The notes under the pieces were generated by a model. The model had not been told where the DNA came from. It worked only from the letters and a program-made list of their open reading frames with translations, and searched no databases. Made by a program: the position numbers and the translations under genes. Source: Paragordius varius (taxonomy: Eukaryota > Animalia > Nematomorpha). Taken from it: a stretch of DNA of 64,000 bases. The DNA lies in NCBI GenBank assembly GCA_964247055.1, contig OZ176054.1:5394001-5458000 (forward strand), written 5' to 3'. Shown one piece after another: positions 27,701 through 28,607 of the stretch (its first letter is position 1; each line of letters starts with the position of its first letter).

Positions 27701-28607
27701 CCTAATTAGAAAAATAAAAAGTTTAGCTTTTATATTAATTGATATAACAGGCATTGTCAATCATTAAACAGTATCAAAAAGGATGATATCAAAATTGCCC
27801 TATTATTTGCTATTTGTCATAAAAATATTTTTTATTTGACATATCTAGGAGAAAAATTATCGGAATGTGTTAGATTATTACAAAATTTGTGTGCTGACTT
27901 ATTATGATAATGATCCCTATAATTTACAAGCCTACCTTATCATTTTGATTCATAAAATTTGAAAAAGAAGATAATTTATTAAAGTTTTCATTTATAGCAT
28001 ATATCTTAAAAGGATGTTTTTAACTATAGAAATAATCAAAATTTAATAAAAAAAATAATATATTACCGATGGTTTTGGAACGGACTACTTTGTATTTATT
28101 GTGATTGTTTATATGTGTCCAAAAATTGGAATGTGAGAAATTAGAATAACGTGCTAAAATTGTTAGCTCCTTTTTTTCGGGAGCCCAAAGGAGCGGCAGC
28201 ATAAATAGATCTAAAATTAAACATAATATGCCTGCAAAATTTTTGTTTAAGCATTGTTCAGCAATGATTTCATCGTTTTTCATATTGTATACATAATCAT
28301 CACACAAAAAACAAAAAATATTTCCATATTGTAAATCAAGGCCTGAAATTAAATTCTTGTACTTTGGTAATGTTCAAAATGTTTCATGTGCTTTTTTATA
28401 TGATTGTTTGCACGACAACCAACATAGACACACTCCAAACATAAATGTAGTCGGGAAAAATATAAATTACAATCAAAACATTTGTACTAAAATATACTAA
28501 TCAGTTACATATTTATTTCTCCAAATGATTTGTTTATGGATGTTTTTTAAATTATTTAAAAAGCGATTATTTTTGAAATTTTGCGTGTGCGTACATGGGT
28601 CCAACAT
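24786..28607 (-). CDS. USP22: Ubiquitin C-terminal hydrolase, USP22/USP27/USP51 (Ubp8/Nonstop) family, SAGA DUB module, multi-exon
   Basis: zf-UBP (CFDC...[12 protein letters not shown]...HIKKH...[11 protein letters not shown]). Cys box [21 protein letters not shown] (exon 26119-26285). [35 protein letters not shown]. His box [22 protein letters not shown]-terminus WYRCNDHII...[15 protein letters not shown] (TAA 24786-24788). Confidence 0.93.
26894..26935. repeat. (AT)n microsatellite inside the large USP22 intron
   Basis: About 21 perfect AT units. Confidence 0.95.

Follow-up and report, generated by a model that had tools for sequence, protein, structure and literature searches.

Two segments of 22 and 20 nucleotides (nt), at positions 28487-28508 and 28343-28362 of the window (the whole stretch of 64,000 nt that was analysed), are very probably real spliceosomal introns, of the U2-type GT-AG kind, in a functional USP22/nonstop gene, the second of them being an ancient intron that appears to have shrunk. 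A scripted reading of the minus strand placed both segments exactly to the base where the first-pass annotation had set them, and recovered the in-frame TAG in the 22-nt segment and the in-frame TAA in the 20-nt segment. Excision rejoins a zinc-finger peptide, as had been claimed: exon 1 ends in ...IIWRNKY, exon 2 runs from YKCFDC to HFEHYQ, and a split Ser codon leads into exon 3. The two introns look to be among the shortest of any animal, and no other of the 50 introns defined in the analysis is as short as the 20-nt one.

Three-frame translation combined with inspection of the DNA delineated a USP22/nonstop orthologue on the minus strand with 14 exons and 13 introns, the latter measuring, in order, 22, 20, 1781, 120, 33, 29, 41, 29, 31, 30, 39, 52 and 26 nt, with about six of the 13 falling below 30 nt. 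An exon-by-exon codon count with carry-over of split codons gives a coding sum of 1569 nt, that is 522 codons and a single terminal stop, compared to orthologue lengths of 488-530 amino acids (aa). The protein has a ZnF-UBP at its N-terminus and, after it, a USP catalytic domain in which both the Cys box and the His box are present. In homology searches the exons were used singly. Exon 2 matched positions 1-39 of the Pfam zf-UBP profile with 26.9 bits (cut-off 22.7) in a single-exon scan and with 28.9 bits in a second search with this profile, and positions 2-55, 66-105, 111-137, 157-189 and 198-222 of the Pfam UCH profile were matched colinearly by exons 4, 6, 7, 11 and 12. A query with exon 6 against 1.84 billion representative proteins recovered 457 relatives but nothing above 75% identity, implying that this set holds no protein from the same species. 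The best full-length matches across all exons were to USP22, USP22-like or nonstop proteins of scallops, fish, Toxocara, Trichoplax, Drosophila and beetles. A search for homologous proteins with exon 3 gave zero matches, sequence searches of the PDB with single exons returned nothing informative, and tblastn of exons 1-3 against zf-UBP paralogues within the genome yielded only noise. By its domains and nearest relatives the gene is an intact USP22/nonstop/Ubp8 deubiquitinase, whose activity is predicted.

Exon-by-exon alignment is colinear with the USP22 proteins of scallop, Trichoplax, fish and a nematode. Exon 1 (28509..28607; start codon 28607-28605; 33 codons) supplies the first Cys/His of the zinc finger, and local alignment places its residues 5-28 on residues 6-29 of scallop USP22 (P0012), with a corresponding match to residues 4-27 of Trichoplax USP22 (P0100). 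It is followed by the phase-0 intron 1 (28487..28508; 22 nt; GTA...TAG), in which the in-frame TAG lies at offset 9 upon retention. Exon 2 (28363..28486) carries zf-UBP positions 1-39, its residues 3-40 matching P0012 residues 46-83. The phase-1 intron 2 (28343..28362; 20 nt; GTA...CAG) splits a Ser codon, with the in-frame TAA at offset 11 upon retention, and exon 3 (28067..28342), aligning from its first residue with P0012 from residue 86, completes the zinc finger with its last CxxC pair and provides the linker to the catalytic domain. P0012 residue 84 is thus matched by the final residue of exon 2, residue 85 by the split Ser codon and residue 86 by the first residue of exon 3, leaving no gap over the 20-nt intron, and the USP22-like residue spacing proposed from the first reading is borne out across exons 1-3. 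Since the Pfam zf-UBP domain of P0012 spans residues 46-106, the domain extends over intron 2, and exon 3 encodes the final CxxC ligand pair. Intron 1 sits in a loop nine residues shorter than that of the orthologues, and because this loop is variable in length the junction is placed by frame and GT-AG ends alone. The only other acceptor for intron 1 would leave an intron of 12 nt and a frame that meets a stop; no further frame-restoring GT/AG pair was found near intron 1 or intron 2.

These alignments bear on the proposal that translation starts further downstream, yielding a protein devoid of the zinc finger, with exons 1 and 2 being non-coding and both segments irrelevant. Weak conservation of exon 1 (alignment scores 42-55) and a USP22 start codon only 22 nt from the divergent start codon of the neighboring GANP gene would fit such an arrangement, but exons 1, 2 and 3 together supply all the conserved Cys and His residues of the ZnF-UBP at the spacing seen in orthologues, exon 1 aligns with the extreme N-terminus of both the scallop and the Trichoplax protein, and exon 2 has no Met until the middle of the finger. 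We accordingly regard a downstream start as highly improbable.

Intron 3 (26286..28066; 1781 nt; GT-AG; phase 1 within a Gly codon) separates the zinc finger and linker from exon 4 (26119..26285), which encodes the USP Cys box (UCH positions 2-55, E=2e-10). The phase-0 intron 4 (25999..26118; 120 nt) is less certain, as the succeeding 37-nt exon 5 (25962..25998) falls in a variable region without homology support and is placed only by the requirement of frame, which makes it the weakest part of the model. Intron 5 (25929..25961; 33 nt; phase 1) shows an in-frame TGA when retained and precedes exon 6 (25791..25928), with UCH positions 66-105 and up to 75% identity to USP22 orthologues. Next come intron 6 (25762..25790; 29 nt; phase 1), which starts with GTT, and exon 7 (25584..25761), with UCH positions 111-137 and an alignment reaching P0012 residue 315. 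Across the phase-2 intron 7 (25543..25583; 41 nt) P0012 residues 315, 316 and 317 are continuous, with exon 8 (25490..25542) covering residues 317-333. Past intron 8 (25461..25489; 29 nt; phase 1), the end of exon 9 (25403..25460) and a split Arg codon run into exon 10 in a ...CLL|R|FTSKE motif, interrupted by intron 9 (25372..25402; 31 nt; phase 2). Exon 10 (25245..25371) corresponds to P0012 residues 371-412, and residues 412 and 413 are contiguous across the phase-0 intron 10 (25215..25244; 30 nt), which has an in-frame TAG when retained; the exon 7/8 and exon 10/11 junctions are hence as exact in the P0012 alignment as the exon 2/3 junction. Exon 11 (25099..25214; UCH positions 157-189) and exon 12 (24976..25059; UCH positions 198-222), the latter bearing the His box, flank intron 11 (25060..25098; 39 nt; phase 2), which has an in-frame TGA when retained. 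Intron 12 (24924..24975; 52 nt) could also be modelled with GT-AG ends at a length of 25 or 37 nt, and orthologue spacing favours the 52-nt model (an excess of one residue as against seven or 10); together with exon 5 it is one of the weakest parts of the gene model. Exon 13 (24855..24923) matches P0012 residues 496-516, and the phase-2 intron 13 (24829..24854; 26 nt) leads to exon 14 with the stop codon (24786..24828), matching residues 518-529 and ending in the sole stop of the 523-codon frame. Hence, the other introns of 26, 29, 29, 30, 31, 33 and 39 nt listed by the first-pass annotation were all recovered, and its list lacked those of 41, 52, 120 and 1781 nt.

All 13 USP22 introns have GT-AG ends and 12 of them start with GTA; retention of any one of the 13, including the four with lengths divisible by three, brings an in-frame stop. 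The G+C content is 0.315 in the exons against 0.196 in the short introns. Given f(GT) x f(AG) of 0.0014 in this gene and approximately 16 donor/acceptor combinations per junction, a GT-AG pair would be expected by chance with a probability of about 0.02 at each junction, and at all 11 short junctions with a probability of about 6e-19; chance origin of these junctions is excluded. This figure also weighs on the suggestion that the gene is a pseudogene, or distorted by assembly errors, with the two segments being frameshifting insertions rather than introns. The genome is indeed AT-rich and repeat-rich, conditions under which indel errors are common, and the gene model derives from genomic sequence alone. 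Nevertheless, every one of the 13 interruptions is GT-AG, their removal leaves 522 codons without an internal stop, and the Cys box, His box and zinc ligands are all intact. Introns 2, 3 and 7 furthermore occupy ancestral positions, and unrelated genes of this animal display the same intron length class (both points are detailed below), such that we would grant a pseudogene or assembly error very little probability.

For an outgroup for intron positions we scanned USP22 relatives on JGI metagenome contigs, three of which (L117, L118 and L121) contain a USP22/nonstop gene with best protein matches to Timema (60%), scallop and Carabus, so that an arthropod-like animal is the probable source. These contigs, up to 27 kb in length, have USP22 introns of ordinary size, about 176-385 nt, and offer a handy outgroup. 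L117 has a 176-nt phase-1 intron in the codon right after ...HFL, which is exactly the codon and phase of intron 2. In L118 the Gly codon that intron 3 splits (G|GT), ahead of LRGLINLG, is also split by an intron of about 179 nt, and a phase-2 intron of about 385 nt lies two bases past the same Cys codon as intron 7. For intron 1, the nearest acceptor in the arthropod-like gene lies three codons upstream of the equivalent position, within the loop of variable length; a search for the upstream exon of this gene found none. A further contig, L099, has a phase-0 intron one codon away from intron 4. The identity in codon and phase between intron 2 and the 176-nt intron indicates that the former is an old intron which shrank to 20 nt. 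The claim that spliceosomal introns are needed to assemble the USP22 zinc finger thereby gains the shared 176-nt intron position in addition to the GT-AG ends, the colinearity of the exons and the intact 522-codon frame.

Removal by a machinery other than the spliceosome, namely programmed DNA elimination of the kind acting on ciliate IESs, or endonuclease-ligase excision as in XBP1 and tRNA introns, was also considered. The sizes resemble those of ciliate IESs, and steric arguments drawn from human splicing make a 20-nt spliceosomal intron seem difficult. The ends of the segments, in contrast, are GT-AG and not TA-TA, their positions are those of ordinary spliceosomal introns of another animal, ordinary long GT-AG introns occur in the same genes, and comparable introns in Myxozoa were confirmed by long-read RNA (PMC13644364). 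We judge this alternative very improbable, with spliceosomal removal remaining strongly favoured.

The first-pass annotation had also supposed that introns of this kind are general in the animal, which a sample from unrelated genes supports. Many exon pairs matching the Pfam Ras profile lie only a few bases apart in this genome; from the genome-wide matches we fetched 20 loci, which yielded 37 small-GTPase introns, with boundaries set by frame, profile continuity and GT-AG ends, and one gene checked by hand. Sixteen of the 37 are micro-introns of 21-31 nt (21, 21, 22, 22, 22, 23, 23, 25, 25, 25, 26, 26, 28, 29, 31 and 31 nt; 14 of the 37 at 21-29 nt), eight range from 53 to 86 nt and 13 from 254 to 3214 nt, with none between 31 and 53 nt. 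In a Rab-like gene for a small GTPase, which precedes the window by 33 kb (L058; G000:C5:5361143-5361730), the five introns measure 21, 21, 22, 22 and 22 nt; one of the 21-nt introns lacks an in-frame stop and its retention would add seven residues. By this comparison USP22 introns 1 and 2 are assignable to a genome-wide class of approximately 20-33 nt, which is found alongside introns of 50-90 nt and others that reach from hundreds to thousands of nt. Long introns are common, as the exon matches of CCT genes lie 125-1271 nt apart; an open frame of 590 aa at a CCT locus did not prove to be a true ORF. USP22 intron 3 carries a dispersed repeat of about 240 nt (window 26739-26984) that includes an internal inverted match and for which at least 129 candidate copies were found at 70-89% identity, and part of this intron is probably a transposon insertion. 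These mostly long CCT introns and the dispersed repeat indicate that the genome is not compact. When the window was scanned without a reference for ORF-bridging GT..AG segments of 15-80 nt, no signal rose above that of control dinucleotide pairs; the scan is uninformative because exons are too short and open frames of 30 codons too common.

The splice-site motifs of the micro-introns are reduced to GTa ... AG. Position 3 is A in 20 and T in six of the 26 micro-introns; near the acceptor T occurs at -3 in 19, T at -5 in 19 and A at -7 in 16. None of the 26 starts with GTAAGT as against four of the 24 longer introns, and the differences between the two groups in +4A and +5G are trends only (p = 0.08 and 0.12). 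The 5' sites of USP22 introns 1 and 2 show weak U1 complementarity, at 4-6 of nine positions. The A residues at -7 in 16 of 26 are candidate branch points, with the AT-rich sequence precluding assignment. The genome has a U1 snRNA gene (124.3 bits) with the canonical 5'-site-binding sequence ACUUACCUG and a U2 snRNA gene (177.7 bits) with the canonical branch-binding sequence (GUAGUA region), and neither recognition sequence gave any sign of re-tooling. The U2 matches cluster on C3 (G000:C3:257000-528000), which has most of the 46 matches, many of them degraded, and U1 matches cluster on C6 (G000:C6:565000-633000); both clusters resemble arrays of snRNA genes in which many copies have decayed. 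A spliceosome specially adapted to micro-introns, as the first-pass annotation envisaged, is hence a matter of inference only, and since U1 and U2 snRNAs are canonical any such adaptation would have to lie in proteins or kinetics. We propose, as the probable mechanism, that an otherwise conventional major spliceosome treats each micro-intron as a single unit by intron definition. It would rely on a minimal GUA at the 5' site, UAG or CAG at the 3' site, a branch point in an A-rich stretch that lies a few bases ahead of the 3' AG, and an intron G+C content far below that of the exons. The in-frame stop in each USP22 intron could then direct unspliced transcripts to decay, with spliced exons 1-3 yielding the full ZnF-UBP.

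The start codons of USP22 on the minus strand and of SAC3/GANP on the plus strand are separated by 22 nt (window 28605-28632), which implies that the USP22 5' UTR overlaps the GANP coding region, or that there is a 5'-UTR intron, or trans-splicing; an acceptor-like ...TTTATCAG immediately precedes the USP22 ATG. The products of these two adjoining genes are members of complexes that have ENY2/Sus1 in common. Elsewhere in the window, positions 1-24000 are of near-constant composition (GC 0.34-0.355, with steady negative GC skew), as is typical of a long tandem array, and an ORF of 157 aa for an alpha-crystallin-type small heat-shock protein (window 23731-24204) lies at the edge of this region. 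A multi-exon gene on the plus strand at window 46000-56000 encodes peptides which by eye are armadillo-repeat-like, of the catenin/plakophilin type, and it probably has more short introns.

With respect to lineage, two proteins encoded by single exons, the 965-aa GANP of the adjoining gene and an 832-aa BRAP encoded on another chromosome, have their best matches in Gordionus sp. (Nematomorpha) by a clear distance, GANP with 320 bits against 224 and BRAP with 451 against 317, at an identity to Gordionus of only 39-40%. The animal would thus be a distant relative of horsehair worms, and it appears to group with ecdysozoans; these matches place its lineage outside Myxobolidae and Dicyemida and point to a further lineage with ultra-short introns. 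An ORF of 968 aa without any stop implies the standard genetic code.

Micro-introns of a similar length range are well known from ciliates, at about 25 nt in Paramecium and 15-16 nt in Stentor. In-frame stops in Paramecium introns have been proposed as a safeguard through decay, an idea echoed by the stop in every USP22 intron. Ciliates, however, have essentially only micro-introns, whereas here long introns share the gene and the code is standard. The lineages that the first-pass annotation listed as possessing such introns, namely ciliates, nucleomorphs and dicyemids, should now be extended by the myxobolid Myxozoa (PMC13644364). Among 51 animal genomes Hadjez et al. (September 2026) found introns below 30 bp only in myxobolid Myxozoa and Dicyema, with median lengths of 27 bp in Henneguya salminicola and 22 bp in Thelohanellus kitauei and Myxobolus rasmusseni. 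They describe a canonical U2 alongside splice signals reduced to 'GTa' and 'AG', and predicted further lineages; Nematomorpha go unmentioned (PMC13644364). The present case resembles that of the myxobolids in having animal GT-AG introns of 20-30 nt at conserved positions, a 5' signal of approximately 'GTa' with little beyond AG at the 3' end except weak A residues before it, and a canonical branch-binding region in the U2 snRNA. It differs in that the best protein matches are to Gordionus and not to cnidarians, and in that the micro-introns make up one class in a repeat-rich, uncompacted genome of 110 Mb that also has many introns of 50-90 nt and 0.25-3 kb; the myxozoan introns are RNA-confirmed, whereas ours are read off the genome.

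Dicyema japonicum, with introns of mean length 38 bp (Lu et al. 2019, PMC6736024), offers the parallel of a bilaterian parasite in which intron positions were kept and lengths drastically cut (PMC6736024). Dicyema is nevertheless a spiralian with a 67.5-Mb genome at 36.7% GC, as against 110.6 Mb, about 25-35% GC and ecdysozoan affinity here. Human 'ultra-short' introns are 43-65 nt long and spliced in dependence on SPF45/RBM17 (PMC4463651; bioRxiv 10.1101/784868). They share with the present introns truncated pyrimidine tracts and, presumably, the need for modified 3' site recognition, but the human minimum is about twice as long. Neither the Gordionus genome paper, which gives a BUSCO completeness of 71.6%, nor a comparative preprint on Nematomorpha discusses introns.

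Introns below approximately 30 nt were, to our knowledge, long believed to be missing from animals. We lean, by a modest degree, towards a third, independent animal origin of spliceosomal introns under 30 nt, in a relative of the horsehair worms, with a class of about 20-33 nt and a floor near 20 nt lying beside kilobase introns in a repeat-rich, non-compact genome with canonical U1 and U2. If this is true, intron miniaturisation would not be a by-product of genome compaction, and introns of 20 nt would be within the reach of a nearly standard metazoan spliceosome. USP22 provides a clean worked example from what is apparently a further, ecdysozoan lineage, in which an ancient intron, of 176 nt in the arthropod-like animal, measures 20 nt and adjoins one of 1.8 kb. 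The genome thereby offers a natural system for asking what fixes the minimum intron length and how one spliceosome copes with both extremes. There is also a practical corollary, in that the default minimum intron lengths of aligners and gene predictors will fragment such genes and could skew estimates of gene loss; if our reading is true, gene finders blind to micro-introns may have inflated the gene losses ascribed to nematomorphs and contributed to their low BUSCO scores.
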